A stretch of DNA of 64,000 bases, from contig NW_026889805.1 in NCBI RefSeq assembly GCF_033153115.1, positions 5,332,001 to 5,396,000 on the forward strand, in the 5' to 3' direction. This DNA is from Saccostrea echinata. Lineage: Eukaryota. The notes beneath the pieces are model-generated. The model was not told where the DNA came from and searched no databases. It saw only the letters and a list, made by a program, of their open reading frames with translations. A program made the translations under genes and the position numbers. Positions 13,864 through 59,161 of the stretch are shown here, piece after piece (within the stretch, counting starts at the first letter, position 1; every line of letters starts with the position of its first letter).

Positions 13864-14202
13864 CTTATTAAATATATATTTATTTATTCTTTCATTGATG
13901 TAGATCTACAGGGCTCCATCTGGAGCACTGACCTACATAGGTAAAAGGTTAAAATCTTGTAGTGAAGGGCTATTGGATTAGAATCTGGATAAAAACAATG
14001 TCCCTATTTACAGTGTCATGTTCTCAAGTGAATCAGTGTGTAAGGTATGCTGTGGCAAGGAGTTCCAGAGGGAAATAATGGCTGGAAGATTCCAGATAAA
14101 CCTATAGCTAAAAACAAAATGACAGGCATACTCCACTGTTTAACTAAAGCCCGAATTGAGGAGGGGGTAAAAATGGTGTTATACACCTTCATTTACATTA
14201 GG

Positions 14203-15459
14203 CAGGTTGGGCACACACACACCACCAAATGGTCATTTATCCCCCGTTCGGTGCTCAATCGCCCATATCGGAGTCGTATTTACTGACCAAATGGTAGTCT
14301 TTTTTATTCAAATCCAATTTTTATAAAAATAAAGCAAAGGCGCATTCGTATAGGCCTCGGGGAATTTTAGTAATCATATTCCTCGCACAATTAATACAGT
14401 TCGGTCGATTTTCCATGTGTAATTTCTGTGGAACTTCGTAAAAACGATACCTACAGCTGTCTGTGAAGGCCGAACTTCTTGCTTAATCAATCCAAAAAAT
14501 ATTTTCTTGTGTTTAGTTTAATAAAAATTCTATTTAGACCAGTGGTTTAACTCTTTAGAAGTTAACTTTCAATCGATCTTTGGATCTTTGTCTAAATAAA
14601 TCTCTATAGAATCCAGTTAAACACGAGCTCCTCATACTTTACTGGTATGGTGGGCACTTACTGCTATAATAGTCATTTTTTCTACATTTGAATGTAACAT
14701 TTATTCTTTATTTACTTTTAGGATGAAGTTGCGATTTCTGTGCGACCTTTGTGGTTTAGTATGCATATTTGTGATGAATCTACTACATTTAGTCAAAGAT
14801 TTTGAATAAAAGATTTACAAAGTGACAGTTGCTATTATTCTTGATTTAAATTCCAAGAACATCGTTTTGAAGCAATTATTATATCATGATCTCATGTACA
14901 TTTTATTTTTATAAAGAATAAAGCCATTACGTACAAAATAAACGAAATAAAAGCAAATTCATCTTTTTCCTTTTACTTTCTAATTGAAAATTGACGCTAA
15001 TGTGTCTCCGTAGTTAAATCAGACTTTTGACCCGGTTCGGAAAAGATCATCATTTCTTATTGGTTTAAATTACTTGATTGGTTGCCCGGATGATAAAAAT
15101 AGAAAGTAAGAAACATGATGAACAGGTGCAACTACGTTTGGGAAGGAGAGAAAATTTCTTTTTAAAGTCAAAACACAGAAACGTTGTACTTGTCTGCATT
15201 GGTGATGATTTGGTAAAAAATTGAATGACACTGCGCAAAAAACTCCGTGTTGAATTTCCAATTTTTTTTGTTCATAGTACCGATAAATGTTTATATTTTA
15301 TTCCCCACGAGTTAATATTATGCGCCATTTCACCCCATTCCACAGAATTGAACAAAACGATTTTACTCTCCCAAACGGTCAGTAAATACCGACTCCGATA
15401 TGGGCGATTGACCACCAAACGGGGGTTAAATGACCATTTGGTGGTGTGTGCCCAACCTG
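14203..15459. mobile_element. Non-autonomous DNA transposon with ~85-bp TIRs (no clear TSD)
   Basis: caggttgggcacaca..ccaccaaatggtcattt...gtatttactgacc and its inverse at 15377-15459. Confidence 0.85.
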
Positions 15460-15963
15460 TTGGGGGGGGGGATTTTTATGATAGGGTTTCATTTGTTACT
15501 GGTAAAAATTCAGACTCTGTTGCCATTAAACATTTGATCCCAGTCTCATTTTTCTACTATCTTAATTTTATTCTTTATGCAAGAGCGAGACCCTTCAAAA
15601 GTGAGCTTGCCTAAAGTCCCAGATGCCGTTTACCGTTCGGTACAACTGCCTACTTATGACAATACATAAAACAAAACGCCAAAAGTATAACATGAATTTT
15701 GGCTTTTATTCTCTCTAATTCAGTTATAAGTATCACTCTCTGTTTCACTAACTTCGTACTTAGTATTACAATACAATGGCGTCTATTCTCTATATATATG
15801 AAATATACACCATCTCTATACAAAGGATTACTGTTCCAGGAAACATACTATGTAACAAAATAAATACTTAGTTTGATTAAGACAAGCTTATAATGCATTC
15901 TTCAATAAATATTGTGCTTGTGTTTCTTACACAACCAGAGGATTGCAAAAGATTTAAGGTTAC

Positions 15964-17888: not shown

Positions 17889-20250
17889 AAATTTTGCAAA
17901 ACTTTTAGAGAGTATATGCTCTCTGCATTCAAATCCAACATTACACTGTTGGGGTCGAGTATCAAATTCATTATACAACGTAACTAATCCGAATCATTCC
18001 CCAAATCGTATTTCAGAAAAAGCGCAGACAGAGAACAAAAAACTCTGACAAGCACAAACGCGCACGCACGCGTATACATGTACATAACCATGATGACATC
18101 ATAGACTGCTGTTTTCTAACTTGTATATAGTATGGACACTGCTCTCCACAGCTGTCACTCACAATAATTAACCAAAATCTAAAAAGCCAGTCCGCCTGTC
18201 GGTCAGGCCTTATAAAGCCTTCATTCTGTGATGGATCTATTGGGTCAATTTCGATATGGAGCTCTCCGTGTCCTGGTATATGTAAATTTAATACGTATTT
18301 CAATGTGTCGAGCTATCACATATATGATATGATATTTATGACCAATATGATTAGGGAACGACCGAACGGTGACCAAATTCACATCCTCAATATTCAGAAA
18401 AATGCATGTATATAGGAATAGAAATGTACCAGTTTTTCTTCTGGTAAGATTTTGTATTTTCATCAAATATTTTATCACACTACCTTTTAATTCCTTATTA
18501 TTAGAGAATAACGAAATTCCATGACTTCTGTTTTGAATAAATTAAAACTATCAATAATTTCAAATTATTCCAATCTCATGCTCGTATTAACATTTAGAGA
18601 TAACAACGGTTCGATTTTAAAGCGACAAAGTGTTTTTTTTTTTTTAAACTTTAAAGAACAACTTTAAAGAACACAATAGGTAATTATTCCTGGCTTCATT
18701 TGAAATTATTGAGTGAGATATTAAGTTTTAAAATTTAGTTTAATTTTAAAATCTAATATCTCTTTGTAACACTTGATGTCCCATTTTGATTCTATCCAGG
18801 CCACGGGCATAAGCTTAGATTTGACAAGTATTAGCTTTCTTAAAAAGCTGGTCTGACGTGAGCAAAATTTATTATTATACGAAGAATTAAGAAAAGTTGA
18901 ATCCAGCGTAATCAACATCATTCTGAGTCCAGAAATAAGTTATTTTGCTAAGAAACAAAAGAAAGTTCAATCCCGCGGCATCAACATGAAGTAAAACTCA
19001 GATATGAATTTATTCTATTTATACTGACAAATATTACCTGTAATTTTCTTTTTTTCTTGGCCGTAGGACCCCCCCCCCCCGTATTTTGCTGATATATATA
19101 CTTTTAATTATATGCTATAAAAACACTTATGCTACTTTATGCTCGATTCCCATAACTCAAGTAAATAATAACGTATGAAATTCATGATAATTTTTTTTAC
19201 TTGATATTAATGATAAGGAATTTTTCCTTAATAGTGCCCCTCCTCTATTGAAATTTTTGGTTGTGGATTCCCTCCCCATGAAAATTCTTCCGACTAGCCT
19301 TTTCCTAGATACATAAATATAACCACTGCTTTTGAAAGAAAAAGATAAAACATATTAAAAAATCTAAACATCAGTAAAATTCGTGAACAGTTGGGGGAAT
19401 TATTTTTTTTTTAATCATAAACTTGTTTTAAATGAGCAAACGTCAGCAGAGTTATGCATATGTGTATTTCTTAATTAAGGTAGAAAGACTGTATGCATTG
19501 AAAATAAACATCTATTAGTTAATCTGATAAGGATATTCGGCATATATGTTGACCTGATCGACCAGATTCCTGTTGTTTTCCTGGACGTACATGAATAATT
19601 GTAATGTATAAGAGAGTGGGCAAATGTTATATTATGTATAATGTGATAATAATTAGGACCAATGCTTTGGTTTGTTTGGATGTTTAGCCATTAATCCCCA
19701 TGCTCTCAAAATTGATAGTTAAGATAGAATGAAGTTTCTAAGATCGAGTTATCACAATAATTCTATTGAACGACTTGACCAACAAGCCTTGGCTAAATCT
19801 AATACTGTCTGACGCCATGACGTCAGACAATAAAATGCAGCCATGTTATTCCAAAAAGAAAACTTCACTGTTTCAAAAACGTTTATAGATATTCCTTTTT
19901 AAAATTCACTCGCAAGAACTTAATTTGAATAATTTAGTTTATGTTAGGTGATATCAAATAAAATTCATTTGAAATATTTAGGACTTTTTTGCTCTGAAAG
20001 ATGGAATTCTGTAATTTCTCCAGTAATACTTTCAGCCATTGGTAGTTTTATCCGGCAAATCAAGAGGTCTCTGCATTGGTTTTAAAGCTTACACGACATA
20101 CATTGCTTAAGTGAAAAATCAAAGGAAAATATTTTTGTTTTAAATACAGAAAAGAAAAATGGTCTGTGGTCATTCAAATCCCCTCCTCGCTTTTAAATAA
20201 TTTATATAACCTCTGTGTCATGACTATGGAAGCGGGAATTAAGGAGCCAG

Positions 20251-20467
20251 GGGCCCGTTTTACAAAAGAACTTACGACTAAGACCAAAACTTTAGCTGAT
20301 TGTAAAAATGTTTCAAATTTAATGATTTTCATTGAAATTGCCAGCATAAAAATATCTTGTTAAATTCTTTCTAAAAATATTAAAATCATTTTCAAATCAA
20401 TATAAAATTAGTTATAAGTAGAATTAAATGTTGGTCTTAGTCGTAAGTTCTTTTGTAAAACAGGCCC
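20251..20467. mobile_element. PIF/Harbinger-type MITE
   Basis: cag|gggcccgttttacaaaagaacttacgactaagaccaa ... ttggtcttagtcgtaagttcttttgtaaaacaggccc|cag, with a 3-bp CWG TSD. Confidence 0.85.
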
Positions 20468-21081
20468 CAGGTGAGAAAAATATTCCGTATATCACTGATC
20501 TTTGTGATGCTGACTTTATATTTGTTCAAACAATGTTCCGTAAAACCAGTTCAAAATTATTTGCAGAGATATATATATTTGAAATAAGATTCAATCGCCT
20601 CGATAAAAGCAAATATGATTTGTCTAGTTATAAAAATCATCATCATGAATTAATAATTCAAGATTTTAATAAAACCATTTTCAGAGTCTTGATCCCCTTT
20701 AAATAAAACGAATTACATCAACTAGATGGCTTAATTTTATTCTTTTTTAACAACCACCATACTTATCCACTTCTTTAGAATATGCTTAATTTGTGCTAGG
20801 TTAATTTGTCCCGCGGGAAAGAAGGAATGATTAACAGACCTAGAAACCTTCTTCTTTGTAAAAAATATGAAATCTTTAATCTTAGCTAAGTTCTAAATTT
20901 ATTTACAACGAATAATTAAGGTCACACATCCAAATGCCTAAATGGCAACAGTGTAAATTCCTGCATTTGCTGGGAATGGTGCTCTTTATGACAACTGAAA
21001 TTTTTAACTTAAACACTACATATCATTTTTATATTCCTATTACTTAACACGTAAAATTTTAATTTTTTAATGATATTTTAG

Positions 21082-24000
21082 ACGGTTGTGACTCTGATAG
21101 AATTCGGTTTTTGTGGTCATGGATCATTAAATAATCTGGATAAACAACTACAAAGCATACTAAAGCACTACGCAGGAGGAATTTCTCCAGCACTAAGCGA
21201 GCGTCTTCAAGAAATCATCAGGTCCAATGTACAGACACATGACTTTGTTAAAAACACAAAGAAAGATAGAGAAACATCAACAAATAAAACACATCTGGAA
21301 AATGCTAATGGGAATAAAAATAAAACAAAAGATCAGTTAAAGAAATTGCCTGCTTCGGGGAAAGGAAATTCAAAAATGGTGGCGAAAACAAGTGAAGCGA
21401 CAGAGCGGACAAGCAATGACATAGAGAGAATGGTAACTGCAAATAGAACTGACGTGGAAAATCGATTCAAAAAACGGGAAAATATCCAAATCAGCGACAA
21501 TAACAGAAAAAGTGGAAATCAGGCAAAATTTGAACCAAATGTTGGAGGAAAAGTAAATATCGAACGTAAATCATCCGACATAAAAGTAACCACAGATCAC
21601 GTTAATACAAATATCACTACAGATCATATTAACGTTATTCAACCCGATGGTTATAAAAGAAAGCCTCTACAGACAGAGAAGAAGCCAATGAAAACCAAAA
21701 ATAGCGGTGTTTCTCAAATATCTAACAGTTCCACAGAAAAACAAAATGTCTCAAACTTAAATTTGCGAATAAAAGAGAACAAAAAAGACAGTTATCAACA
21801 AGTACCACTCATGCAAAATCATCCTAGAATGTCAATTATTGAAGTGAAAAACACTTCATCTACGAAAATTTCGAAATTAACAAACCAGTTGTCAACGAAA
21901 GGTCATATTTCACATACATCAAGTTATTCTCATTTGCCAATTTTTGAACGGAAAAATAATTTACCAACGAAAAAACATTTATCAGGTACAATTACAAAGA
22001 ACCACCAAGTGCTTAACTCAGGAAACCGTCCCAATCCATCAATGTCCAAAGTAAGCAGTAGTTTTTCTATGAAAGGGCATCTCCCAGAGATCCCAATACA
22101 CCAAAATAACTCTGGAATGTCAATAATGGGAAACCACCAACATGGTCTGCCCATTGCCAAAAGGAAAATTGATTTATCAACGAAAGGCCTAGCGCATTTT
22201 AGGGATACAACAAAACGTCATCAAGTGCATAATGGAGGAAACCGACCTGATAAGTCAATATTCAAAGACAAAACTAGTCTACCTATGAAGGAACACATTT
22301 TAAAGACACCAACACGCTATCAAATATCAACAATGGGAAAACACTATGATCTGCCAATTGTCAAAGCGAAAAGTGTAATATTAACAAAAGGGCACTTAAC
22401 AAAGACTACAAAAAATCAACAAACTTTATCACTGGAAAATAAAAATTCTGCCTTCAATCCTAAATACAAAAGCGAAAACATCAACTTCTCCCACTTTTCT
22501 TCATTGTCAAGAAATCATCCAGCACAACATGTATACAATGGAAAAGAGTATGGAAGAGAACTATCGAATAAGCAATTCAAAAGGAACCATGATAAGTCTT
22601 TAAAATCACACTTGTCAGTTCCAATAAAAACCGAACAAGAATTGTCAACAGCAATATTTACCTTTAGTCCCCCAAAACAATTTCATGAAAATGAACAAAT
22701 GAAACTTCGTAGGTCTTTTAAACCTTTTATTCGACAAATTAAAAAGAAATTTTCTTTAACGCCTTCTGAGAATCAAATAAATCGCCCTCGACCTTTCGAA
22801 ATCGTATCCAACCACAGAAAAAGTATGTTGACGAACAAACAAACGACACAAGCCACAAATTCATGGAAAAGACCCGTTCCAGAAACACACGTTGCTTGGG
22901 AAAATATACCAAAAAAACATACCCAAATAATACAACCTCCAAATGCAATTTATGATCAACTGAATCTCCAGTCCTCAAACAATTATTACTACGATAATAC
23001 TAATCAGGAAACTCTTCCAGTCAAAAGACAATATCCACGGAATTCGCTTGGACAGCTACCGGGCATATCGTCTTTGCATAATGAGCAAAGTTGGAACAAA
23101 GAGTTTTCCTCTGGAACAAATAACCAGCTGCAACATCCAAATCAGCCAAATCCCGATAGATTGACAATTAGTTTTCAAGGATTCAATAAGCTTGACAAAA
23201 CAAAGTCACTTGCAGGATCACCTGAACGCTTCAGTAACTCGATGATAAACAGTAATAGGAAGACACATAGTCTCACCAAAACAGACAATTTTTCAGGAAC
23301 AAAATCATCGAGTTCGGGTTCATTTAACGTTGACATGTATATTCCAGACACACAAAAAGAGAGTAAGTTACCTTCTCAAAAGTGGCAAAAACAACCAAGT
23401 GTCGTATACTCTAACTTTCAGGATAGCTCACAAAAGAATAACCTGAAAAACAGGCAACAGTCCTCGCCACAGAAACCAAATAAAGACAAAAATTTCCAAT
23501 CTCAACAAAGGTTAACTCATCCAAGTGTTGTATACTCTAAATTTCAGGATAATTCACACCAACAAAACTGGGAAATACAAAACCAATGGAAAAAACCCAA
23601 GGACTTACGAAGTCAAAGGTTTAACGAAAACACCGGAACACATATTAGTAATAACTTTATACACACTACTACACTACCTCCATATTTCAATCCTGCTTCT
23701 TCTCCATCAATGTATGCACCTCCAAACAGGCCAAATTTACAGCCAGGCATAGCTACATTTACTCAAAACAATGCAAGAGCTGGACAGAACCTAGGATGGA
23801 ATGGTTTCACAACGCCTTTATATGATAAACAGAAATCAGTATTATATTCAAAATCTGCAGTTGCTCCTTTCTATGACCACAAGCCTATTGATAATCAAAT
23901 GACTACTCCGTCTGTAATAACAATTGCTCCCAATTTCTTATACAACCAGGAACAAAAACCACCACACCCTTCAAAGTTCTCGCAGCAAAGAATGAATCCA

Positions 24001-25920
24001 AACTCACAAAATTCAATGAATGACATATCGCTATATCAAGAAAGAAAGAACAATGTGAATACATGGGTCTATTCTTCTACCATACCACCTACACAAACGG
24101 CAGTACCAACAACATATCAAAATACATTTTTGAAACAAGAGATATTTGCTACGAAAGCACCAAACGAATGGATGCGAGCTGGTATTGATAACCAAAATAT
24201 TGAAAATCGGAATATTTATAGTACCAAAACACCAACAGATATATCAGGACAGAAGGGAGAAAATCAGCATCAACAGTATCGTAATCAACAAAATCACCAG
24301 CAAAATAATATCAATCATTACCAACAATTTCAAACACAACATGAAGTTTATCAACATCAATCACCTCAATCCAACCAACCAAATGAATCCCAAATGAATC
24401 AAGATTTCCAAACACAACAAACATATCTTCAAAAATATAAACAAACACAGCTAAAAAACCAAAATGCATTCTCAAATCCTGGACAATTTCAACCACAAAA
24501 CGAAAAAACAAGCCAAACGAAATCGTTTTCTGATCAACAAACATTCAACAAGAAAAGCAATTATCAGCGAGAAACCCCATCCTTAGTTCATCATCAACAA
24601 CGAACCGAGCACTTTGGTCAACAACAACGAACGTTATCAAATCAACATCAACAACAGGCAAGTCAATATCAAAATGAGCAATTCAATCAAGGATACCAAA
24701 CTTCTTTCCAGAAATATAAAAAATCCAGTCTACAGCAAAATAAGAATTTTGGTTGGCAAAAACAAAGACAGCAACCAAACCAATATCAAAATGAGCAAAT
24801 GGAAAATCTACCAAATAAACAACCAATTGAACAGACACTCGGGGGAGTGGGTCATCAGAAGCAAAACTTGCTCGGAAAACATCAACAACCACGTCAACAG
24901 CAAAATAAAATAGACCAACAACAACATAATTTATTTGGAAATCAACAACACCAACAACCAAATCATCTGCAAAATGGACAAACTGGTCAAAATCAACAAA
25001 ACTCGTTCATAAATAATCCATCAGTTCAACAACAAAATACGCAAGCTGATCAACAGCTTCAAGATTCTTTTGGAAATCATCATCAACAAAACAATCAATC
25101 GCTAACTGTACAGACGGGTCGACAACAGCAAAGCTCAATCGGTATTCAGCAGCAGCAACAATCAGGCAAACACCAAAATACGCAAGAAAACTCTATGCAG
25201 AATCAGAATCATTCAGAACAACCTCAACAAGAAAACAAATTCAACCAACAAATTCAGTCTATTCAGCAGCAACAATCAAACAACCTGCAAAATCAACAAC
25301 AGGATATCAGATTTCCAAAACAAATGCAGGAACAACAGCAAGTAAATAGTTTCCATTCAAATCAGCAAGGGCAATCTGTTCAACATCAGCAACAACAAAA
25401 CCAGCAACCTGTCAATGACGGTAGAAATATGAAAAGCAATTTTCCAGTAAATACGAGACCAATTAGAAGGAGACCCAAAAATATTCCAGCGCCTGCTTAC
25501 GTAAGTAATTATTTGAATGATGGTATGTTGTTTGACTAAGTTAATAAGGAATATACTGACAAAAATATTTTTGCGGGGGAGGTGCCCCCCCTTCCGTTCC
25601 CCAGGTTCCTACGGGCCTGAGAGCGCAGTTGGTGTCTATACAAATCTAGTGCATTCTGCGTTCAACAATATTGGCATTTTACAGGGATTTTAAAGAAAGA
25701 AATATATAATATACTAGCAATTTACTAGTATAATTCCTTTAAAAAAAAAAACTAAAAAATGTAAAAAATATTTTTCAAAAATTTATAGATATTTTTATTT
25801 GAACAATAAAATGGGTTAGAGTATAAGAATCAATATTGCAGCCGTTACAGATAAAATACATAACCCGCGTAAGCGAGTAATGTAAATTTTTTTTCTGCAA
25901 TAGCTGCAACGTTAGTTCCC

Positions 25921-25960
<40 letters not shown>

Positions 25961-27466
25961 TTTCCTGTTGAAATAAAGTATATTTTGAACAGTTGGCATT
26001 CGGCGTGTACTATCCAGATGGTACAACCACAGAAGAGGAGCACGATCTTTTGGGAAAATCCATCCACACTATAACATCATATGACGCAGACAACAGTTCA
26101 CATATATCGGACTACCTCACAATGGACCATGGATGGGTGTGTGAGAACATCGTACCTCTTTCTTTAATATTAATTATAATTTATAAACCTATAAAAGATT
26201 TAATATTTGTCTTTAAAATATTTTTGACAGAATACATTTGGATTGGTGTCACAAGGCAACAACAAAGACACGTGTTATGTTGGGAAATTACAAGCTGATC
26301 TCATGAAATCATTTGAGGAGATGGTGAACAAGACAAGATTCTCCGACGTAAGTCTTCAGAGAAGTTCTCCTCACAGGTACCACACATATAGAAGTATCAT
26401 TAGATTTAATTGTAGAGTTGTTTTTTTTTCTTTATAGATTCCATTTATTGAGGCAAACTCAAATAAGTTCGTATACACAGAAGTCCAACAGATAGATTAC
26501 AACCGGGCTGTTTACGAAGTCGGGGGCTTTGTCTCGGATTCGTGTGGAAACAGAGCCAATATATTTCTTGTAGAAAGACCCCGTCATGGACGTGAGTTTT
26601 ACTCAATAACTCCCCCTTCAAATATAAAGAAAATGTGCGATAGCAGCTGGATTTGAATTTTAAAACAAATCTGCTATGACAATCAACAAATATGTCCTCT
26701 TTTCGATATTAAAATAAAATCACAAAGGTTGTACTTATACTGGTAACTCTCTCTAAATCAAAGAATGGTAAATACGATTGATGAGGAACATACACAGAGT
26801 CATAAGAAGATAAAATTCACAGAAGTTTCCTGGTTATTTCTCACCTTAAAGTTTTTTTTTAATCAATTTTCACACACAAGATATATACATAAGATACGAT
26901 GCTGGATAAAATATTCACATTGTAAATAGACTGTAAATTGAGCGTAAGCGTAAACCCTCTGTTTTGATGCAAAAGTATTCTAAATCAATAAAATGTAAGA
27001 ACATTTCTAAATCCATCAAAAGCCATTTTATTTTGAAACAGGAGCCGTAGGTGTTTATTTGATGGTAAACTGTTGAATTGTTCTGGATGTCACTCAATAA
27101 GGGGAGCGGGAAGGGCGCTTAACCAATACCTTGTTTTCTCGCAACATGAACAAACACTCCTCAACACATTATCTACACAATTACATTACAAAATAAATTT
27201 GAAATGAGAGAGAGGAAGTAAGTACCTTTTTGAGATATTTGTTATTTTCAGGGTTCAAGGCCGGCAGAAAGTTCATTCCTCCCACTGCCTGTTCATTCGG
27301 TCCTCCTCAGCAGCGTATGAACAACGCCTTGTTGAAGTGTAGCATGGGAACTTGTCGTGGAAATTACAGTTGCAATACAAAATACAACATATGTTGCCCA
27401 AAAAGTAGGTCTTCAATAATAGTTTTAGCATTTTTAAGACAGATGTTACAGGCTTTGCTGTTGTAA
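21082..27466 (+). CDS. Large low-complexity (K/H-rich then Q/N-rich) protein with BRICHOS-like domain and C-terminal lustrin-type 6-Cys module. Exons 21082-25500, 25993-26136, 26231-26347, 26438-26591, 27252-27466 (or donor at 27404); first exon not located
   Basis: 4.4-kb open exon bounded by tttag| and |gtaagt. The downstream exons join in frame (phases 0,0,0,1) to give ..MDHGWNTFGLVSQGNNKDTCYVGKL..VGGFVSDSCGNRANIFLVER.. then CSFGPP..C..C..YSC..CCP. Confidence 0.8.
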
Positions 27467-28854
27467 GATATGTCTTTTATGTTCATTGTCCCCCGATTTC
27501 GTGAAAAATATCATTCGTCTTTCTGTTCCCTTGTCAGTCTTTCTTTCTTTCATAAAAAACTTTAACATTGGACCTAACTTTTGAATGAGAAAAGATATGG
27601 CTTTCATATTTCACATGTGCATTACCTGTGACAAGAACTTTTAGAATGTACTATGATTTACGACCTCATGACCTTGTAGTTTGCAACGTTTTAACCTTGG
27701 TAATGACTTTTGTATGAGAGAAGACAGGTCTTTCATTATTACGCATTACCTGTTCATGCATTACCTGTTACCAGAACATACAACGACTTTTTATCTTATA
27801 ATTTTGACCTTGACATTGGAACTACTTTTCAAAAAGTACTACATGTATATACGGTAAAAGCATGAGGCTGTGTGTAAATCATGTGATAACAAGATTAATT
27901 GTTGTTGAAGTATGATTTTATCCAACTCATTGTGTGTTCTCTATCTCAATCCTTGGCGAGGGGATAAAACACACAACTCATTAGATAAAAGTCATATCCA
28001 ACCATAACCATGGGGGTTCCTATATTTATTGCATTAAAATATGCAAACTTTTCCCTGGTTTAGAATTTATTTAAATATTTCTACATCAAAGATTAATTTT
28101 GGACATTACAGGATAATATAGTTCTTTCAACCTTGGCTGTAGCTTCTGAACGAGAGGAGATAAGGCCATCATATTTCATATATGCATCATTTACCTGTGA
28201 CAAGACCTTTCCTAGGGTCCTTGAATTTTGACCTGCTTAAAAAAACCTTGACCTTAGCTTTTGCAAATGAAGAAACAGGGCTTCATGTGCATTACCTGTG
28301 ACAAGACTATTTTGAATGTACTATGGCTTCATGGCCATTGGGCTAGTCCGATCGAAGTTTAACTTTCAAAAACTTGAACCATCGCCGTAAGTCATCCTCT
28401 CAACATCAGAGGCCCGAGCCCCTGGAAACTCTGACAAATTTCTTCCGGGTCAGCTTCTCTCATTGAGAAGCACCATCTAAGTGGAGCTTTCATAAGTTTA
28501 CATGAAATATAAACAGAAAGGAAGCAGTTGACACCTCAATGCACGTGTAACAAGTTGTTTTTCAAAAAGGCTTAATGTCATTGACCGAGAGACAAGAAAA
28601 CAATGTGATTTCCACGAAAGACGTCGCTGCGATCAGCCCTTAAAAAATTAATGAAGCTTGTCAGTGGTCCCTCGGTCACTGTTGGACTTGAGATCCTTGA
28701 CGTTTTGTGTGGATGTACCATAAATTTGCACTAGAACATATAACATGTACTTCAAAATATTAATATAAAACTTTCTTATAAAAGTATGATGGAAGACAAG
28801 GCAGTTACAATATGCAATTTAATGTTGCATTCGAACCGATCAAATTGTTGAAAT

Positions 28855-29590
28855 GAAGAAAACACTTGCTGTGGCGTTCAACTCGACATTTAGATATATC
28901 GACGACGTATTGTCAATTAACAATGGCTATTTTCATTCTTATGTCGATACGATATATCCCGGTGAACTTGAGATAAAAGATACCACCGAGTCTGACACAT
29001 CTGTTTCATATTTGGATATTTTACTTGAAAAAGACGTTCATGGTAATCTAACAACCTTTATGATAAACGTGATGACTTTAACTTTTCAATCGTCAACTTC
29101 CCTTACTTATGCAGCAATATACCTTCATCACCTGCATACGGGGTATACATTTCTCAGTTGATTCGATACGCAAGAGCATGCTCTACGTATGTACAATTTC
29201 TAAAACGAGGTAAATTATTGACAAATAAGTTGATGAAACAAGAATATCAGCTGTCTCGTTTAAAGTCATCATTTCGTAAGTTCTATGGTCGATACAATGA
29301 CCTTGTCAGCAAATACAATTTATCATTGAGTCAAATGCTGACTGACGTTTTTCATACTAATTGTTAGGCCATTATTTACACACTGAATTGTCGACGGATT
29401 TTTCCGTTATTTCCCGATCATGACAAGGAGCACACGGCGGATGTGACCAGTCGGCAGGGGATGCTCACTCCTCCATGGCACCTGATCCCACCTCTGATGT
29501 TTGGAGGTCCGTGTTTGCTCTGCTCCTATTTTGTATTGTATAATGGACTTTTGAGCTTGAATACTGTTCGTTATCTCCATATATTTCATG
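28855..29590 (+). mobile_element. 5'-truncated Penelope-like retroelement (C-terminal RT, Naiad-like), frameshifted
   Basis: FRYIDDVLSINN..YPGELEIKDT..SYLDI..DKRDDFNF..SNIPSSPAYGVYISQLIRYARACS, with the ORF ending right after RT. It is absent from the duplicate copy (empty site aaattgttgaaatacgatttg at ~57190-57210). Confidence 0.85.
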
Positions 29591-31038: not shown

Positions 31039-32953
31039 AAGAACCACTGAGCCGATTTCAACCAAACTTGCCACAAAGTATCCTTGGGTGAAGGGGATTC
31101 AGGTTTGTTCAAATGAAGGGCCATGCCCTCTTTCAAGGGGAGATAATAAAGAATTAGTGAAAAATTAATAGCATCTTTTAAAAATCTTCTTGTCAAGAAC
31201 AACAGAGCCAGGGAAGATGAAACTCATGTGGAAGCATTCTCAGGTAGTGTAGATTCAAGTTTGTTCAAATCATGACCCCCGGGGGTAGGGTGGGGCCACA
31301 ATGGAGGATCAAAGTTTTACATAGAAATATATAGGAAAAACCTTTAAAAATCTTCTTCTCAAGAACAGCAAAGCCATGATGAGTCATATTTATATAGAAG
31401 CATGCTCAGGTAGTAAAAATTCAAATTTGTTCAAATCATGACCCCCGGGGGTAGGGCGGGGCCACAATGGAGGATCAAAGTTTTACATAGAAATATATAG
31501 GAAAAATCTTTAAAAATCTTCTTCTCAAGAACAGCAAAGCCCTAATTGGTCATATTTATATGAAAGCATCCTCAGGTAGTGTAGATTCAAGTTTGTTCAA
31601 ATCATGACACCCGGGGGTAGGGCGGGGCCACAATGGAGGATCAAAGTTTTACATAGAAATAAATAGGAAAAACCTTTAAAAATCTTCTTCTCAAGAACAG
31701 CAAAGCCATGATGAGTCATATTTATATGGAAGCATCCTCAAGTAGTGAAGATTCAAGTTTGTTCAAATCATGACCCCCGAGGGTAGGGCAGGGCCACAAT
31801 GGAGGATCAAAGTTTTACATAGAAATGTATAGGAAAAATCTTTAAAAAATCTTCTTCTCAAGAACAGCAAAGCCCTGATTAGTCATATTTATATGGAAGC
31901 ATCCTCAGGTAGTAAAAATTCAAATTTGTTCAAATCATGACCCCCGAGGGTAGGGCGGGGCCACAATGGAGGATCAAAGTTTTACATAGAAATGTATAGG
32001 AAAAATCTTTAAAAAATCTTCTTCTCAAGAACAGCAAAGCCCTGATTGGTCATATTTATGTGGAAGCATCCTCAGGTTGTAAAAATTCAAATTTGTTCAA
32101 ATCATGACCCCTTGGTGTAGGGCGGGGCCACAATGGAGGATCAAAGTTTTACATAGAAATATATAGGAAAAATTTTAAAAATCTTCTTCTCAGGAACAGC
32201 AAAGCCCTGATTGATCATATTTATTTGGAAGTATCCTCAGGTTGTGTAAATTCAAGATTGTTCAAATCATGACCCCCTGGGGTAGGGCGGGGCCACAATG
32301 GAGGATCAAAGTCTTAAATAGAAATATATAGGTAAATATCTTCTGATGAAGAACTGTAAAGCCATGATTAGTCATTTTGATATGGAAGCATCCTCAGGTA
32401 GTGTAAATTCAAGTTTGTTAAAATGATGACCCCCCGGGGATAGGGATGGGCCACAATGGGGGGTCGAAAATTTTACATAGGAACATATAGGAAAATATCC
32501 TCTTCTCAAGAACTGAAAATCATGTTTAGTCATTTTGATATGGAAGCATCCTCAGATAGTGTAAATTCAAATTCGTTCAAATGATGACCCCTGGGGTAGG
32601 GTGGGGCCCAATGGGGGATTGAAAGTTTTACATAAGAACATGCAGAAAAAATATTTCTTCTCAAGAACAGAAAAGCTATGTTTAGTCATATTGAAATGGA
32701 AGCATCCTCAGGTAGTGTAGATTCAAATTTTCAAATATTGACCTCTGGGATAGGGAGGAGCCACAATGGGGGATCAAATTTTTACAAAGGATTATATGGG
32801 AAAAATTTTTCAAAAAATTTACTCAAGTACAACAAAGCCATTTGTTATATTGACATGGAAGCATCATCAGGTATCCCCCCCTCCCCCCCCCCCCCGGTAA
32901 CCTTTTCAATACTGAACTGATTTGTGCTTTTGTGCTTTTGCCTAGCCAATGTG

Positions 32954-32989: not shown

Positions 32990-33629
32990 CCAAGTGCAAT
33001 TAAAATTGACTCAGAAAAAAAAAAACTAAACCAAGGATCATTATTTTATTTATTGCTGTTGTCATAGTTTCAAGTCAAACTTCTACTTTTTTAATTAAAT
33101 AAAAACCAGTAAAGCTACATTCTTGTCAGAGACTTCTGGTTTTAAATATTTATATCTTACTTTTAAGTATGAAGAGATAAAACTGTCTTTTTTTCAGGGC
33201 CAAGCAATACAAAATGTCGGAAGATGTCTATTGGAAAGTTTTGTGTGATTCACGCGCCACAGTACGGTTATTATCCAGGCTGAGAGATGTTCGACTGAGA
33301 GTACACGAGTACTCTATCCATAAGCCGAGGCATGAAACAGTCATCGGCATCTGATTATGAGAAAAGTCCCCATGTAACCTGTCTTTGTATGCAGTGCTTG
33401 TTTTGTTGGTGCCAAATTCTGAGAGAATTTCTTCAAATTTTTTTTAATGTTATTTGAAATAAAATTGTCCAACATATTTAAGATATTATAGACTTTTAAT
33501 GATCAACTATTTCCTCTGATTTTCCTGTATTTTCAAATCTTGGTGAAAAAGGGATTTGTTCACTCTTAGAATTAAGACATGATTTTGACAATTCTTATGA
33601 CTTATTACAACATTCTCAACTACCAGGTA

Positions 33630-42245: not shown

Positions 42246-43382
42246 TTGCTATGACTTTTTTACGTCATATTGTAGACTGGATTATCTATACCTTAATTGC
42301 ATTCGTTGGCGTTCGACAGTTACGGAATTGACCGAGTTTAATCCGCAGTGTGGGTACAACCAAATTTACATCAAGTATCACAAGCATGGAAGGAAACACA
42401 AGATATGTCAAAATAAAAAGTAAAAGGTATAACAAAACATTTATTGACTGTGCTCGGGCAATATGTGTTTTGTCAAACCCTTGAACCATGGAAACTGTTT
42501 GCATTCGGCCTAACGGCCTCAGGCAAACATTTTGGTTCTTGGATCCGACAAAACGCATACTGCTCTCGAACCAAGTCAATAAATGTATACTAATACACCT
42601 TCGTGCGAACAAGATACTCGGTAAGTCGTTCGAACGACATGATATCTCGTCTGCATGTCCCAAATACAATGCATATAATCGTACTTTTGCATGAAAAATC
42701 TCTGTATTATATTGAAAGAAAGGTCAGGAGCGTTACAGGCCTCCGACAAAACATTATCTTTAGAGCAAAGTCAAATTTCTTTGTCGCCACAATGATTAGA
42801 TGAAAACACGTAGACGAGGAAAAGAAGCAAGTTGCCTAACATTTGGAGAAATCAACATGAAGAAACCAACCCAACAATTTATGTATGCTTGTATATTTTA
42901 GTTACACCTTTGAAATGTTATTGTTTGAGTAATGAGTATGATTGCAATTATGTGGAATTCATGCATGCACTTTTTAATTTACAGGTTCAGAATTTCACAC
43001 GTTAATGTTCGAGGTCTTGAGTGGAGTTGCAAATGTTATATTAAACTCAAAAGCTTTTGAGGTCGTTCTACAAAATCTCATGAAATTTTATAAAATCAAT
43101 TTTGTTAAGAAGTCTGATTTAATAAAACTGTTTACCTTTGAGAATTGTTATCTACAGCAAAACACCTACCTGCTAGCTGTTACGATTGTATGTATGACTC
43201 TGCATGACAACATTTACTGCATGGAGTACCTGATAAGAATAATTTATACGCAATGTCGTATGACATAAACAAAGTTATTATCAGTTCAAAAAGGTTCTGT
43301 TACTTAAACAATTTACTAAGTAATATTTTCTTATAATACTAATCAATTTTGCTTTATTTAAGCTAAAATTTGAATTATGGAG

Positions 43383-52536: not shown

Positions 52537-53210
52537 CTATTTTGACAATGGGTTTAGATTTAGACAATTCTGATATCTGATCCTTGGTAATAGGCTCTTT
52601 TTTCTGGACAACACGACTAGCTTTCCGTCTTGCGCTTCTTGTAGAGATGTAACGTAGGAATTCTTCGTTGGGTCTGGTAAACCTGCACATTCGTGAGCCC
52701 ACTTAATCGCATACACGGCAACGTTCACAGGGTGTTGAGATGATCCGTTCTGTAACAAATGCGTCAGGTATAATGCCTCATGCATGGGACTTGCCGGTAA
52801 CGCACTATGTACTTGAACTTCAATGAAATTTTTCCATCTCTTAAAAGCGTTAAAATAGGATTTATTAGTGTTATCGCTTTTACTTGACAAAATCCAGCTG
52901 CTTAAATATGGACACAGATCAGCCAATTAATTTCCAGGTTCAACGCCATGTTTTCTGCATTTCTTTTAATGCTGTCATGGAGTCCTATTCCTGTAAAAAT
53001 ATGTCATCTATATCAAAATTTTATTTTCAGAAAAATCATGTTAAATAAAAGACCTTTTTTTCCCAAATATTCCATTATTTCCTCTTCCCCTGCAAATTGC
53101 ATGAACATTTTGTATTTTCGAAAAAATTTTAACATAATGTTTGAAATTTCCCTCCTTATCAATCAACATTGGCCAAAACGGAGCGGATTTCCACTCCGGA
53201 ATTACCAAAT
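52537..53210 (-). mobile_element. Internal remnant of a DIRS/Ngaro-type element (end of pol ORF plus N-terminus of the tyrosine recombinase)
   Basis: LVIPEWKSAPFWPML at ~53165-53207, then SKSDNTNKSYFNAFKRWKNF..LPASP..ALYLTHL..AIKWAH..GLPDPT, which resembles the YR core-binding domain. Confidence 0.8.
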
Positions 53211-53657
53211 CTGAATGATGGTAAGATGTTTGACTAAGTTAATAAGGAATATACTGGCAAAAATATTTTTGCGGGGGAGGTGCCCCCCTTCCGTTCCCCA
53301 GGTTTCTACGGGCCTGAGAGCGCAGTTGGTGTCTATATAAATCTAGTGCATTCTGAGTTCAACAATATTGGCATTTTACAGGGATTTTAAAGAAAGATAT
53401 GTATAATATACTAGTAATTTACAAGTATAATTCTTTAAAAAAAAAAATGTAAAAATATTAAAAAAAAATATAGATATTTTTATTTGAACAATAAAATGTG
53501 TTACAGTATTAGAATCAATATTGCAGCCGTTACAGATAAAATACATAACCCGCGTAAGCTGGTAATGTAAATTTTTTTCTGCAATAGCTGCAACGTTAGT
53601 TCCCGTAGAGAGAGAGAGAGAGAGATTTCTTTTTGAAATAAAGTATATTTTGAACAG

Positions 53658-55265
53658 TTAGCATTCGGCGTGTACTATCCAGATGGTACAACGACAAAAG
53701 AGGAGCACGATCTTTTGGGAAAATCCATCCACACTATTACATCATATGACGCAGACAACAGTTCACATATATCGGACTACCTCACAATGGACCATGGATG
53801 GGTGTGTGAGAACATCGTACCTCTTTCTTTAATATTTATTATCATTTATAAACCTATAAAAGATTTAATATTTGTCTTTAAAATATGTTTTACAGAATAC
53901 ATTTGGATTAGTGTCACAAGGCAACAACAAAGACACGTGTTATGTTGGGAAATTACAAGCTGATCTCATGAAATCATTTGAGGAGATGGTGAAGAAGACA
54001 AGATTCTTCCACGTAAGTCTTCAAAGAAGTTCTCCTCAAAGGTATGACATAGAAGTATCATTAGATTTAATTGTAGAGTTGTTTTTTCTTCTTTATAGAT
54101 TCCATTTATTGAGGCAAACTCAAATAAGTTCGCATATACAGAAGTCCAACAGATAGACTACAACCGGGCTGTTTACGAAGTCGGGGGCTTTGTCTCGGAT
54201 TCGTGTGGAAACAGAGCCAGTATATTCCTTGTAGAAAGACCCCGTCATGGACGTGAGTTTTACTCAATAATCCCTTCTTAAAAGTTAAAGAAAATGTGAA
54301 AATGTGGAGATGTGGCAGCTGGATTTGAATTTTAAACAAACATGCTATGATAACAAATATGTCAATTTTTTCGATATTAAAATCAAAACACAAAGGTTGT
54401 ACTTATACTGGTAACTCTCTCTAAATCAAAGAATGGTAAATACGATTGATAGGGAACATACACAGAGTCATAAGAAGATAAAATTCACAGAAGTTTCCTG
54501 GTTATTTCTCACCTTGAAGTTTTCTTAATCAATTTTCACACACAAGATATATACATAAGATACGATGCTGGATAAAATATGCACATTGTAAATAGACTGT
54601 AAATTGAGCGTAAGCGTAAACCCTCTGTTTTGATGCAAAAGTATTCTAAATCAATAAAATGTAAAAACATTTCTAAATCCACCAAAAACCATTTTATTTT
54701 GAAACAGGAGCTGTAGGTGTTTATTTGATGGTAAACTATTGAATTGTTCTGGATGTCACTCAGTAAGGGGAGCGGGAAGGGCGCTTAACCAATACCTTGT
54801 TTTCTCGCAGCATGAACAAACATTCCTCAACACATTATCTACACAATTACATTAGTAAATAAATTTGAAATGGGAGATAAGTAGTAAGTACCTTTTTGAG
54901 ATATTTGCTATTTTCAGGGTTAATACTTTGTTTTCTCGCAACATGACAAACATTCCTCAACACATTATCTACACAATTACAATAGAAAATAAATTTGAAA
55001 TGGGAGATAGGAAATAAGTACCTTTTTGAGATATTTGTTATTTTCAGGGTTCAAGGCCGGCAGAAAGTTCATTCCTCCCACTGCCTGTTCATTCGGTCCT
55101 CCTCAGCAGCGTATGAACAACGGATTGTTGAAGTGTAGCATGGAAACTTGTCGTGGAAATTACAGTTGCAATACAAAATACAACATATGTTGCCAAAAAA
55201 GTAGGTCTTCAATAATAAAAGTTTTAGCATTTTTAAGACAGATGTTACAGGCTTTGCTGTTGTAA
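53658..55265 (+). pseudogene. Orphan duplicate of the BRICHOS + Cys-module exons (53658-53801, 53896-54012, 54099-54252, 55048-55265); lacks the giant exon and promoter
   Basis: Near-identical to 25993-27466, with frames still open and splice sites retained. Confidence 0.75.
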
Positions 55266-58200
55266 GATATATCTTTTATGTTCATTGTCCCCTGATTTCC
55301 TGAAAAATATCATTTGTCTGTCTGTCCGCTTGTGCAGTCTTTCTTTCACAAAAAACTTTAACATTGGACTTAACTTTTGAATGAGAAAAGGTATGGCTTT
55401 CATATTTAACATATGAATTACCTGTGATAAGAATGTACTATGATTTATAACCTCATGACCTTGACCTTGTAGTTTGCAACGTTTTAACCTTGATAATAAC
55501 TTTCGTATGAGAGAAGACAGGTCTTTCATATTTCACATTACCTGTTCATGGATTACCTGTTACCAGAACATACAACGACTTTTTTTTCTCATAATTTTGA
55601 CCTATACTATATACGGTAAAAGTATACTAAAAAAATCTGATTATTATGGGGGGCATGATAATCAGATTTGTTTGAGTGTCTCTTGAATTGTACACAATTG
55701 TATAGATGAAAGTATGACGTAACAAATTATAGAATTGATTAGAAACAAATGATTGACATTTTTTGTCTCTATGGCGTCAAAAGCTATTGGGATTTCCTTT
55801 TATTTTATAAAAAAGGGCAAAATGCACAAATTTTATTCAATTTGGATTATAGTAAATATAGACCGAATTTGCTCAGGTGCTATATTCACATATTTCCTTG
55901 ATATTATCACTCTATATCATTCTTACATCAAGAAGATCAAAAGATCAAGTCTATGCAGACTGCGCGATGTTTTTCAATCAAAATTTTGACGTAATACTAG
56001 TTTCAAAATGATTGAAATTTAGAGTACACTTCGTTGTCATGACTTCATAATTTACGATGTCATGATAACAAAAAAATCTATCACTAGTTTACTCCTTTAT
56101 ACAGTGGATATAGCTCATATGATATCGTTTTCAGGAGTTGTGACGGCACGTTTTTCCCCTCCTTAAAATGAAGTGGATTCACATATAAAACCGTGTAAAA
56201 CATAAGGCTATGTGTAAAACATGTAACAACTCTATTGTTTGAGTATAATTTTATCCAACTCATTGTGTGTTTTTTATCCCAAATCCTTGGTGAGGGGATA
56301 AAACACACAACTCGTTATATAAAAGTCATATCCAACCATAACCATGGGGGTTCCTACTTCCTATATTTATTGCATTGAAGCATGCAATTTTTCCCTGGTT
56401 TAGAATTTATTTAAAGATTTCTACATCAAAGATTAATTTGGGGAGCTGGTATTGGACATTACACGATAATATAGTTCTTTCAACCTTGGCTGTAGCTTCT
56501 GAATGAGGGGAGATAAGGCTATATTTCATATGTGCATCATTTACCTGTAACAAGACCTTTCTTAGGGTATTATGATTTTTGACTGCAAGGCATTATCCTT
56601 GAATTTTGACCTGCTTAAAAAAACCTTGACCTTAGCTTTTGCACCGAAAGAAACAGGTCTTCATGTGCATTACCTTTGACAAGACCTTTTTAAATATACT
56701 ATGGCATCATGGGCTAGTCCGATCGAAGTTTAACTTTCAGAAACTTGAACCATCGCGGTAAGCCTCAGAATCCTCACATCAGAGGCCTCGAGACCACTAG
56801 TGGGCGTGGAACCCCTGACAAATTTCTTCCGGGTCAGCTTCTCTCATTGAGAAGCACCAATCAAAGTGGAGCTTTCATAAGTTTACATGAAATGTAAACA
56901 GAAAGGAAGCAGTTGACACCTCAAAAGACTTAATTTGATTGGCCGAGAGACAAGAAAACAATGTAATTTCCCGAAAGACGTCGCTGCGATCATCCTTAAA
57001 AAAATAATGAAGCTTGTCAGGGGTCCCTCGGCCACTGTTGGACTTGAGATCCCTGACGTTTTGTGGATGCACTATAAATTTGCACTAGAACATATAACAT
57101 GTACTTCAAAAATATATAACTTTCTTATAGTATGATGGACAGACAAGGCATTTACAATATGCAATTTAATGTTGCACCCCAACCGATCAAATTGTTGAAA
57201 TACGATTTGTACCTTTTCATATATCTCGATCACGTCGCCAGTGTGGCACAGAGGTAAGAGCATTTGTTCTAGGATCGCAGAGTAAGTTGATCCTTGCCTT
57301 GCGGTTTCGAATCCACCTTATGACGTGGAGGCCAGTCCTTCAGATGAGACCGTATAAACCGAGGTCCCGGAAGGTGCTGGCACAAAAAAAAACCTCTGCT
57401 TAAAAGGTGTAAGTGTCGCATGCAGGTCTTAATCTGCAGCCCTCCACTGGCAAGGACTGCAAATTTAATTTCTATATGAGTGAAAAATTCTCGAAGGGAT
57501 GTAAAATAGCAAACAAACAAATATCTCGACCACAGGAGCTTATTTTTTATAAATCATTTTACTAGCATGTATACTGCAATGTGTTCAAAATAAAAAAAAA
57601 AAATATTAAGAATATTGAAAAATATTATTCTTAAAAATTCTTATGTTTGCAATACTATAACAAATCTTTTGGTACAAAAGTGATTTACACTTATCTTTCA
57701 CAAAACTTGGAACTGGGAATTTTTGAAATTCTTTGAAATCGCTTCATCTACATTCAATAAAATCTGGTACACAAGTAAACGAAAATTAGATTTGTTTAAT
57801 TATTATTAACGTGCTTTAAACATTCTTTCCAACGTATATTGTTCTATGAAAATTCTCGGCCGTAGCTCAGTCATGCCCAAGCCCCGGCCGCGACAGTCAT
57901 AAGTCGATTAAAAAAAATAGGTAGTAACTGTTCCTTCGCCAAGCGCTCGGCACTTTGAAATGAAAGTTGCAAGTCTTTCGGATTAGACCTTAAAAAACCG
58001 AGTCCCGTGTTACAGTAGGTGTTATAACGATAAAGATCCCTTACTGCTCAATGGTCCGAAGTGCCGAGTAATGATCTAAATTTGATACCCTTCACCGGTA
58101 TATGATGATGTCTTAATCTGAATGAAAAATTATTGCATGGGAAGTAAAACATCTTATGCGGTAGTAAGGTGTATGTCTGTCTGTAAACATTTTTTTTCAA

Positions 58201-59161
58201 AATACCATTCCTCCTACAGTTTTTCCAATTTAAATATAACTTGGAACACAAGTAGACTACATAATTCTGTGTATCGGTTTTTGATTTCAGTGAACGGTGT
58301 TGCCAAGGTTACTAAAAATAGAATTTTCTCTGAAATTCTTTCAAAAGCTACTTCTCCTACTGCAGTTTTAGTCGGATTTCAGTCTACCTTGGTACATACG
58401 TAGACTACAAAAAGATACATAATTCTATACATTGGTTTTGATTTCACTGAATGGTGTTGTCATGGTTACTAAAAATAGAATTTTCTCTGAAATTCTTTCA
58501 AAACGCTACTTCTCCTACTACAGTTTTTGTCCAATTGCAATTAAAATTGACTCAGAAAGAGACTAAACCAAGGATCATTATTTTATTTATTGCTGTTGTT
58601 GTAGTTCAAGTCCAAGTTCTACTTTTTTATTTAGTAAAAACCAGTAGAGCTACATTCTCGTCAGAGACTTCTGGTTTTAATATTCATATCTTACTTTTAA
58701 GTATGAAGAGATAAAATTGTCTTTTTTTCAGGGCCAAGCAATACAAGATGTCGGAAAATGTCTATTGGAAGGTTTTGTGTTATTCATGCGCCACAGTACG
58801 GTTATTACCCAGGATGAGAAATTTCGATTGAAATTACACGAGTACTATATCCATAAGCCGAGGCATGAAGCAGTCATTGACAACTGATAACGAGAAAAGT
58901 CCCCATGTAACCTGTCTTTGTATGCAGTGCTTGTTTTTTGGTGCCAAATTCTGAGAGAATTTCTTCAAATTTTTTTTAATGCTATTTGAAATAAAATTGT
59001 CCAACATATTTAAGATATTATAGACTTTTAATGATCAACTATTTCCTCTGATTTTTCTGTATTTTCAAATCTTGGTGAAAAGGGGATTTGTTCACTCTTA
59101 GAATTAAGATGCGATTTTGACAATTCTTATGAATTATTACAACATTCTCAACTACCAGGTA

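Follow-up and report, generated by a model that had tools for sequence, protein, structure and literature searches.

The question raised by this locus is what kind of protein is made when a single exon of 1473 codons, ending in a tract rich in glutamine and asparagine (Q/N), is spliced to a short series of small exons that carry conserved cysteines. The gene lies in a 64-kb stretch of the genome of the oyster Saccostrea echinata (contig NW_026889805.1, positions 5,332,001 to 5,396,000), here called the window, to which all coordinates refer unless stated otherwise. A first-pass annotation had described a giant Q/N-rich protein of secreted type that carried its own BRICHOS chaperone domain and a lustrin-like Cys module. 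The reading favoured here, and considered moderately probable, is that of a giant secreted precursor in which a divergent BRICHOS domain would act in cis and in which cleavage would take place at basic sites. The combination of a Q/N chain encoded by a 4.4-kb exon, a domain of probable BRICHOS descent and a cationic tail with eight Cys is an architecture not described for the BRICHOS family and, as the first-pass annotation had suspected, an unusual one for it.

The gene model was obtained by tblastn of the NCBI protein XP_061164513 (P0001, S. echinata, 1730 amino acids) on the window, and data on the joined protein were taken from the database entries P0001 and P0020. An open reading frame (ORF) of 1483 amino acids extends over 21088..25539, and the exon proper occupies 21082..25500 on the plus strand (4419 nt, phase 0-0), between an acceptor (...ttttag/ACG) and a donor (TAC/gtaagt). 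It is supported by these splice sites, by P0001, to which its translation is 100% identical, and by contigs over 24048-25500. Four further exons follow on the same strand, all of them present in P0001: a 144-nt exon at 25993..26136 (phase 0-0, LAFGVYYPDG...ISDYLTMDHGW), also supported by a transcript junction and an exon comparison described below; a 117-nt exon at 26231..26347 (phase 0-0, NTFGLVSQGNNKDTCYVGKL...), also covered by contigs; a 154-nt exon at 26438..26591 (phase 0 to 1), with a basic RPRHG(R) at its end; and a 153-nt exon at 27252..27404 (FKAGRKFIPPTACSFGPP...CCPK), numbered exon 5. The boundaries are identical in P0001, so the proposal of one giant exon joined in frame to four small ones was correct, and the motifs quoted for it (MDHGW, TCYVGKL, FVSDSCG...IFLV and CSFGPP-x9-KC-x4-C-x3-YSC-x6-CCP) were all found. 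Two details needed revision. Exon 5 had been drawn to the ORF stop at 27466, and its real donor is A/gtaggt at 27404/27405; the Cys module had been given six Cys, and it has eight over two exons, the last coding exon at 33198..33283 (+) having been missed. This exon, placed by tblastn of P0001 5.8 kb downstream of exon 5, encodes (R)PSNTKCRKMSIGKFCVIHAPQYGYYPG and thereby contributes RPSNTKCRKMSIGKFCVIHAPQYGYYPG, a stop codon and two Cys in addition to the six of exon 5; an AATAAA signal lies 3' of it at 33458-33463.

Evidence that the giant exon and the small exons form one gene comes from the contigs of four small runs (X1-X4), which were compared over 20350-26300 and are presumed to derive from RNA; X1 and X2 represent two studies with two organism labels, while X1 and X3 come from one sample. 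An X1 contig of 1319 nt passes from 25017-25500 to 25993-26136 and continues from 26231 onward, and an X2 contig of 713 nt does the same beginning with 25371-25500. Both leave out a segment of 492 nt bounded by GT..AG and a later one of 94 nt, which yields the junctions 25500->25993 and 26136->26231. Thus, a single spliced molecule carries both the giant exon and small exons. Other X1 contigs on the giant exon cover 24048-24210 and 24415-25012. In addition, P0020, a Crassostrea gigas fragment of 239 amino acids found on six short contigs, extends from the end of the giant exon through all downstream exons to the C-terminus and is therefore derived from spliced RNA. The claim of one gene, not two, is upheld by the contigs across 25500->25993 and by orthologue models with the same fusion, and the locus is one protein-coding gene of true oysters (Ostreidae). 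The competing explanation, in which an artefact of the gene model has united the giant ORF with small exons of another gene, is extremely improbable and has already been largely refuted. It could appeal to the four runs, in which neither 21082-24047, the 5'-most ~3 kb of that exon, nor 20549-23931 has a contig, an absence that proves nothing in runs this small, and to a tandem copy at 53209 that has the small exons and no giant exon. Set against this are the contigs of two studies in which the giant exon is spliced to the two exons that follow it, the modelling of the fusion in four species, the crossing of the junction by the cDNA-derived P0020 and the frame of 1473 codons itself, which at 35% G+C would stay open by chance with a probability of about e^-100 as estimated from base composition.

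Orthologues of 1712-2130 amino acids with the same order of parts are present in S. cucullata (P0002, 1712 amino acids), C. gigas (models of 2015 and 2066 amino acids) and C. angulata (a model of 2130 amino acids). The giant part of the S. echinata protein is 67-72% identical to that of S. cucullata and 27-43% identical to that of C. gigas, with many gaps, whereas the last five exons reach 88-96% and 57-82%, respectively. The architecture is kept in these four oyster species, and the BRICHOS-like and Cys parts are far better conserved than the giant part. A phmmer search with exon 2 against 1.84 billion representatives returned oyster orthologues, exon fragments and noise only, and among these representatives no short full-length paralogue was detected. 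The S. echinata genome contains two copies only, both in the window. Sequence searches of the PDB with P0001, profile A1 and P0020 gave noise only. The public names attached to P0001, P0002, P0004, P0015 and P0016 (PF3D7_1417600-like, probable WRKY transcription factor protein 1 and DDB_G0283357) stem from low-complexity similarity and are uninformative about the protein. Literature searches, including those by accession and name, found no paper on the oyster giant protein.

The N-terminus is most clearly seen in Crassostrea, in which the orthologues begin with the signal-peptide-like MYSSMFGIIPCVLLTVAYLSGDSFCGHGSL; the C. gigas and C. angulata models and the fragment P0023 begin MYSSMFGIIPCVLLTVAYLSG or MFGIIPCVLL.... 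The S. echinata giant exon opens with the stretch TVVTLIEFGFCG (also TVVTLIEFGFCGHGSL), which aligns with the last part of this N-terminus in C. gigas. The first-pass description of this stretch as the end of a signal peptide is therefore well founded, and at least one 5' exon exists upstream of the giant exon. The NCBI model of P0001 places the first coding exon at 14047..14166 (+; MLWQGV...RIEEG, located by tblastn of P0001), an assignment that is doubtful because this exon provides no signal peptide and is unlike the N-termini of S. cucullata and Crassostrea. Several other candidates for a 5' exon, e.g. 15478-15501 (MIGFHLLL) and 14723-14770, were considered, none of them decidable.

After the signal-peptide-like end, the giant exon encodes a conserved block of ~45 residues, a basic disordered region rich in S, T, N and K and, finally, the Q/N-rich region. 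It has one Cys in its 1473 codons, within FGFCGHG, and carries 187 K+R vs 99 D+E; S, T, N, Q, K, P and G together make up 61% of it. The Q/N-rich tract, delimited by composition as residues 1101-1500 of P0001 (24262..25461, +), contains 37-51% Q+N per 100 residues, with 56% in the best window of 80 residues. This accords with the ~400-residue tail rich in Gln, Asn and His that had been described, except that His, at 4-6% only, was overstated. In Crassostrea the Q/N region is even longer and includes repeats of the ANGPYxNQQ type. Short beta-prone motifs, PSVVYSxF and ITIAPN, are kept in the giant exon. Compared with family members, the linker has grown ~20-fold, to ~1,470 residues within one exon, and is predicted to be disordered, its first part being basic and rich in S, T, N and K and its second part prion-like and Q/N-rich.

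The two-Cys domain encoded downstream is probably a highly divergent BRICHOS homologue, and much of the argument concerns gene structure. A scan of the genome with PF04089 identified a small BRICHOS gene (L001; contig C8, 11187730-11190849, minus strand), whose orthologue P0012, of 210 amino acids, scores 60 bits on PF04089; two weak matches of the same profile, L002 and L003, were dropped as not exon-like. In the giant protein the landmark residues are spaced D1558-x17-C1576-x59-C1636, invariant in four orthologues, and in P0012 they are spaced D85-x15-C101-x59-C161, so that the Cys-Cys distance is 60 in both. The 144-nt exon would encode the N-terminal strands and the candidate conserved Asp, and a phase-0 intron follows four codons 3' of this Asp in the giant gene (MDHGW/N) as well as in L001/P0012 (HDFQK/N). 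The next exon, in phase 0-0 and of 117 nt in the giant gene and 111 nt in L001/P0012, has its Cys 24 codons from its end in both, and the following exon, in phase 0 to 1, is of 154 nt in both and has the second Cys at codon 36. Thus three intron positions and phases (0, 0, 1) are common to the two genes, an agreement for which chance is, by a rough estimate, well below 1e-4. The identification of the Asp of MDHG as the BRICHOS Asp is likewise backed by an alignment anchored on L001/P0012. In the ESM Atlas, the top three clusters for residues 1500-1730 were BRICHOS clusters, with chondromodulin-1 first (184 shared features) at 0.88, a score that, being below 0.9, counts as a lead only; the remaining named clusters were OAF. 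By published analysis, OAF is a member of the BRICHOS family, accepted without a match to the Pfam profile (PMC9714404). The BRICHOS fold has two helices around a central beta-sheet, with a disulfide that links strand 4 to helix 2. AlphaFold2 models of low confidence placed a strand on TCYVGKL and a helix behind it, and set the second Cys between a helix that just precedes it and a strand that follows.

Behind RPRHGR the protein ends in a tail of 78 amino acids with 8 Cys, 13 K/R and 0 D/E. Basic clusters are kept in four species on both sides of the BRICHOS-like domain, RRR/KRRQR before it and R(P/S)RH(G/R)(R/Q)F after it. The upstream cluster (RRR; KRRQRQLR in Crassostrea), located at 25465..25473 (+) from an alignment of the four orthologues and sitting 10 residues ahead of the BRICHOS-like exons, is a candidate convertase site. 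Neither cluster is a textbook furin site, and both are candidate cleavage sites by sequence only. The first-pass annotation had likened the tail to the Cys repeats of the lustrin/WR1 type (Lustrin_cystein, PF14625), and by eye six of its Cys, in C...C-x4-C-x5-C-x6-CC-P, do resemble CPxGYxC...CCP. This likeness was not borne out by PF14625, which gave no match on exon 5, P0018 or P0020 and, in a genome scan, matched 23 exons elsewhere (6 above the cut-off) and neither window copy; unlike the lustrin module, moreover, that of the oyster protein extends into the last exon, where a further two Cys lie. Exon 5, P0018 and P0020 matched no Pfam family, and the ESM Atlas returned no usable neighbour for the Cys tail alone. 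Docking of residues 1653-1730 on residues 1514-1652 with ESMFold2 scored 0.57 vs 0.34 for the best control, a weak pass that, at <= 0.60, falls in a band in which a prediction is wrong in most cases, except where it was already likely beforehand. The docking runs had predicted local distance difference test (pLDDT) values of 65-66 and 72-74, with 72-74 for the BRICHOS-like domain, and a contact agreement of at least 82%.

A number of results weigh against a secreted precursor with a BRICHOS domain, among them the lack of contigs over much of the giant exon, the modest ESM Atlas score and the docking band. The Pfam hidden Markov model of BRICHOS, proposed earlier as a check on the C-terminal part, failed to recognise it: at thresholds up to E = 10, PF04089 matched neither the single exons nor P0001-P0004 nor the domain fragments P0020 and P0018, and its six-frame scan of the genome gave no match at the locus. 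Comparisons of the domain with bona fide oyster BRICHOS domains by BLASTP, hmmsearch and hhalign were not significant, and in exon-wise alignments the exon with CY(V/I)xKL alone carried sequence signal (z = 3.9), two of the three alignments being without it. AlphaFold2 reached a pLDDT of only 27.6 for a C. gigas form of 1158 amino acids and 36.6 for the fragment of 239 amino acids, because diverse relatives are lacking; no valid fold comparison could therefore be made and the Foldseek result is void. At the N-terminus, no signal peptide is encoded by the NCBI first exon, and neither similarity nor a search for ATG...GT mini-ORFs located the exon that would supply one in S. echinata. The uniformly negative profile tests and the want of a confident structure model would suit an oyster-specific fold, in which a CYxxKL hairpin and two Cys recall BRICHOS by chance. 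Such a fold is nevertheless improbable, as it has to accommodate three consecutive intron positions and phases, an exon of 154 nt and Cys offsets that are all as in the Pfam-scoring L001, BRICHOS as the top three ESM Atlas clusters, an order of parts that is that of the family, and the precedent of OAF, a true member that also escapes the Pfam model (PMC9714404). The BRICHOS domain claimed by the first-pass annotation is accordingly to be regarded as probable, on the ESM Atlas neighbours, the Asp and Cys landmarks and the exon structure, and not as proven, PF04089 having no match.

In the published plan of the family, a signal peptide or anchor is followed by a linker, the BRICHOS domain and a beta-prone C-terminal domain, and the BRICHOS domain has the role of a chaperone in cis (PMC13237185, PMC9714404). 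The giant protein would, in the favoured reading, be a secreted pre-pro-protein of this kind, with a signal peptide or anchor, a linker, a BRICHOS domain and a beta-prone C-terminal domain. The BRICHOS-type domain would act in the secretory pathway and in cis, keeping an aggregation-prone part of its own precursor soluble, and cleavage at the flanking basic clusters (RRR/KRRQR before, RxRH after) would then free the pieces. As to which part is the client, we infer that it may be the C-terminal, Cys-rich and aromatic-tailed domain, to which family precedent, conservation and the weak docking result point. The alternative client would be the Q/N-rich tract, suggested by its composition, the basic cluster upstream of the domain and its N-terminal position, which is like that in proSP-C.

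The same facts permit two other views of what the gene produces. In one, the cationic tail with eight Cys would be an active host-defence or signalling peptide, and the giant region a mere spacer or pro-region. This is a tentative possibility, in which the tail would be released as in the annelid BRICHOS antimicrobial peptides (BRICHOS-AMPs) or chondromodulin-1. It would be consistent with the charge and Cys content of the 78 residues behind the conserved RxRH cluster, with the identity of the Cys exons (93-96% within Saccostrea, 57-81% to Crassostrea), with the weak docking support and with the top ESM cluster, chondromodulin-1 being a BRICHOS protein whose C-terminal domain is rich in Cys and is cleaved (PMC9714404). 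Less compatible with an active peptide are the site, which is not the canonical R-X-K/R-R of furin and in which RK is not conserved in Crassostrea, the length and eight Cys of the tail, unlike the beta-hairpin BRICHOS-AMPs of ~20 residues, and the lack of a Pfam family or usable ESM neighbour; in addition, a pure spacer need not hold 1,400-1,800 codons open with a fixed composition.

In the other view, which is unlikely, the Q/N tract would itself be what the gene is for, a material of shell, cement or mucus that forms a functional amyloid, a condensate or a gel and that BRICHOS keeps soluble until its release. The tract is N-terminal to its putative chaperone, like the mature peptide in proSP-C; its composition (37-51% Q+N, and up to 64% per 80 residues in Crassostrea) is kept in four species despite sequence drift and the gain of repeats, in a frame of 4.4-5.5 kb kept open; and the conserved multibasic cluster between the tract and the BRICHOS-like exons and the conserved beta-prone motifs of the giant exon could be understood on the same basis. 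In nearly all BRICHOS proteins, however, the client is C-terminal (PMC9714404), and the best conserved part outside the BRICHOS domain is the Cys-rich tail and not the Q/N tract. The literature searched offered no link of BRICHOS to shell matrix, byssus, mollusc matrix or Q-rich proteins. A bolder form of this view, in which BRICHOS was recruited in oysters to escort a giant prion-like Q/N polypeptide through the secretory pathway, with multibasic cleavage then yielding an extracellular amyloid, gel or condensate (e.g. an adhesive, mucus or matrix), is distinctly improbable.

The second copy of the small exons in the window arose by a tandem segmental duplication of ~27.7 kb. In a self-comparison of the window, 25511-36000 matches 53209-61233, with 82-93% identity, and the similarity runs on to the window end. 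The left breakpoint lies 10 nt inside the intron 3' of the giant exon. As homology begins at 25511, 10 nt past the giant-exon donor, copy 2 (53209..58817, +) is 5'-truncated and consists of five small exons, with no giant exon and no 5' end. These exons, at 53658-53801, 53896-54012, 54099-54252, 55048-55200 and 58732-58817 (+), have open frames and intact splice sites. Copies 1 and 2 are 96.3% identical in exons and 95.4% in introns. With S. cucullata as the reference for polarity, copy 2 carries the derived residue at 8 of the 11 sites at which the two proteins differ, in some cases where the orthologues are invariant, which suggests relaxed constraint on copy 2. None of the X3 and X4 contigs starts before 25993 or is joined to the giant exon, and their exon junction (26131-26230) is 4 nt shorter than the in-frame junction of X1 and X2 and would shift the frame; it could represent an allele or copy minus one ATGG unit, or an odd splice site. 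These contigs are no proof of copy 2 expression, since their variant letters are common to contigs linked to the giant exon.

Several other features were observed around the gene. Upstream of the giant exon, a short element at 20410-20473 (with an inverted partner near 20174-20347) recurs in numerous contigs that are otherwise unrelated, in each of the four runs and with a loose end on either side, and is probably a dispersed repeat or a miniature inverted-repeat transposable element transcribed inside other RNAs. The 5.8-kb last intron contains a 166-bp unit repeated 10.4 times with 85% matches (31177-32873) and an ORF fragment of transposon-derived appearance (28853-29367, +). The duplication junction at 53209 follows ~280 nt (283 bases) after a second ORF fragment of such appearance (52537-52926, -). 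At 43382-44476, ~50 copies of the 22-bp unit GAGTGGTTATGGATATAAAGGT form a minisatellite, to which the strong positive GC skew at 42-46 kb is due.

An understanding of this gene may be useful in several respects. Research on BRICHOS treats it as a chaperone that naturally opposes amyloid and as a lead for drugs. To our knowledge, all characterised BRICHOS members are small and have short clients. If true, the reading with a Q/N client would provide the first natural BRICHOS guarding a client of the Q/N type, in a size class unknown for the family. The locus offers a natural system for asking what a BRICHOS-type domain can keep soluble, how a linker expands 20-fold inside one exon, and whether molluscs have BRICHOS-linked secreted peptides, reported so far in polychaetes only (PMC9756803). 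It also holds a lesson for annotation, as low-complexity names were misleading here and a domain that escapes Pfam had its relationship recovered by gene structure.

The giant protein shares with the BRICHOS superfamily (PF04089: proSP-C, ITM2/Bri, gastrokines, BRICD5, TNMD/CNMD and OAF) the order of parts, a domain with two Cys and one conserved Asp, and a C-terminal region behind basic residues (PMC9714404, PMC13237185). It differs from these proteins in the missing Pfam match, in a Q/N-rich linker of 1,450-1,850 residues vs tens of residues, in a total length of 1,712-2,130 vs a few hundred residues and in a range, by sequence search, of Ostreidae only. Like the precursors of the annelid BRICHOS-AMPs (arenicin, alvinellacin, capitellacin and nicomicin), it is a lophotrochozoan protein, presumably secreted, in which BRICHOS is followed by a cationic C-terminal peptide with the Cys for disulfide bonds (PMC9756803, PMC10745061). 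The annelid peptides, by contrast, are short double-stranded beta-sheets (beta-hairpins), as against an oyster tail of 78 residues with eight Cys, and the oyster precursor is five to ten times longer. BRICHOS-AMPs have been reported from polychaetes only (PMC9756803).

In CNMD and TNMD, the former being the top ESM cluster, BRICHOS is likewise followed by a separately folding C-terminal domain (PMC9714404). Unlike the giant protein, they are type II membrane proteins of ~320-335 residues, with another Cys spacing. The C-terminal domain of CNMD and TNMD has eight Cys and a GYYP motif; in CNMD, cleavage at a basic site releases it. The CC...C...C...YGYYPG end of the giant protein may resemble this tail. 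A further comparison is with L001/P0012. These differ from the giant protein in their 60 bits on PF04089 vs none, in a linker of ~60 residues that is His-rich (KPHRRPNKHHRHHEHHH) and in a C-terminal peptide without Cys. Nevertheless, L001 belongs to the same genome, has the same exon plan through the domain and a low-complexity linker ahead of it, and even its signal peptide ends in the same manner, in ...G-x-CG(F/H), with RGRCGF there and FGFCGH in the giant protein.

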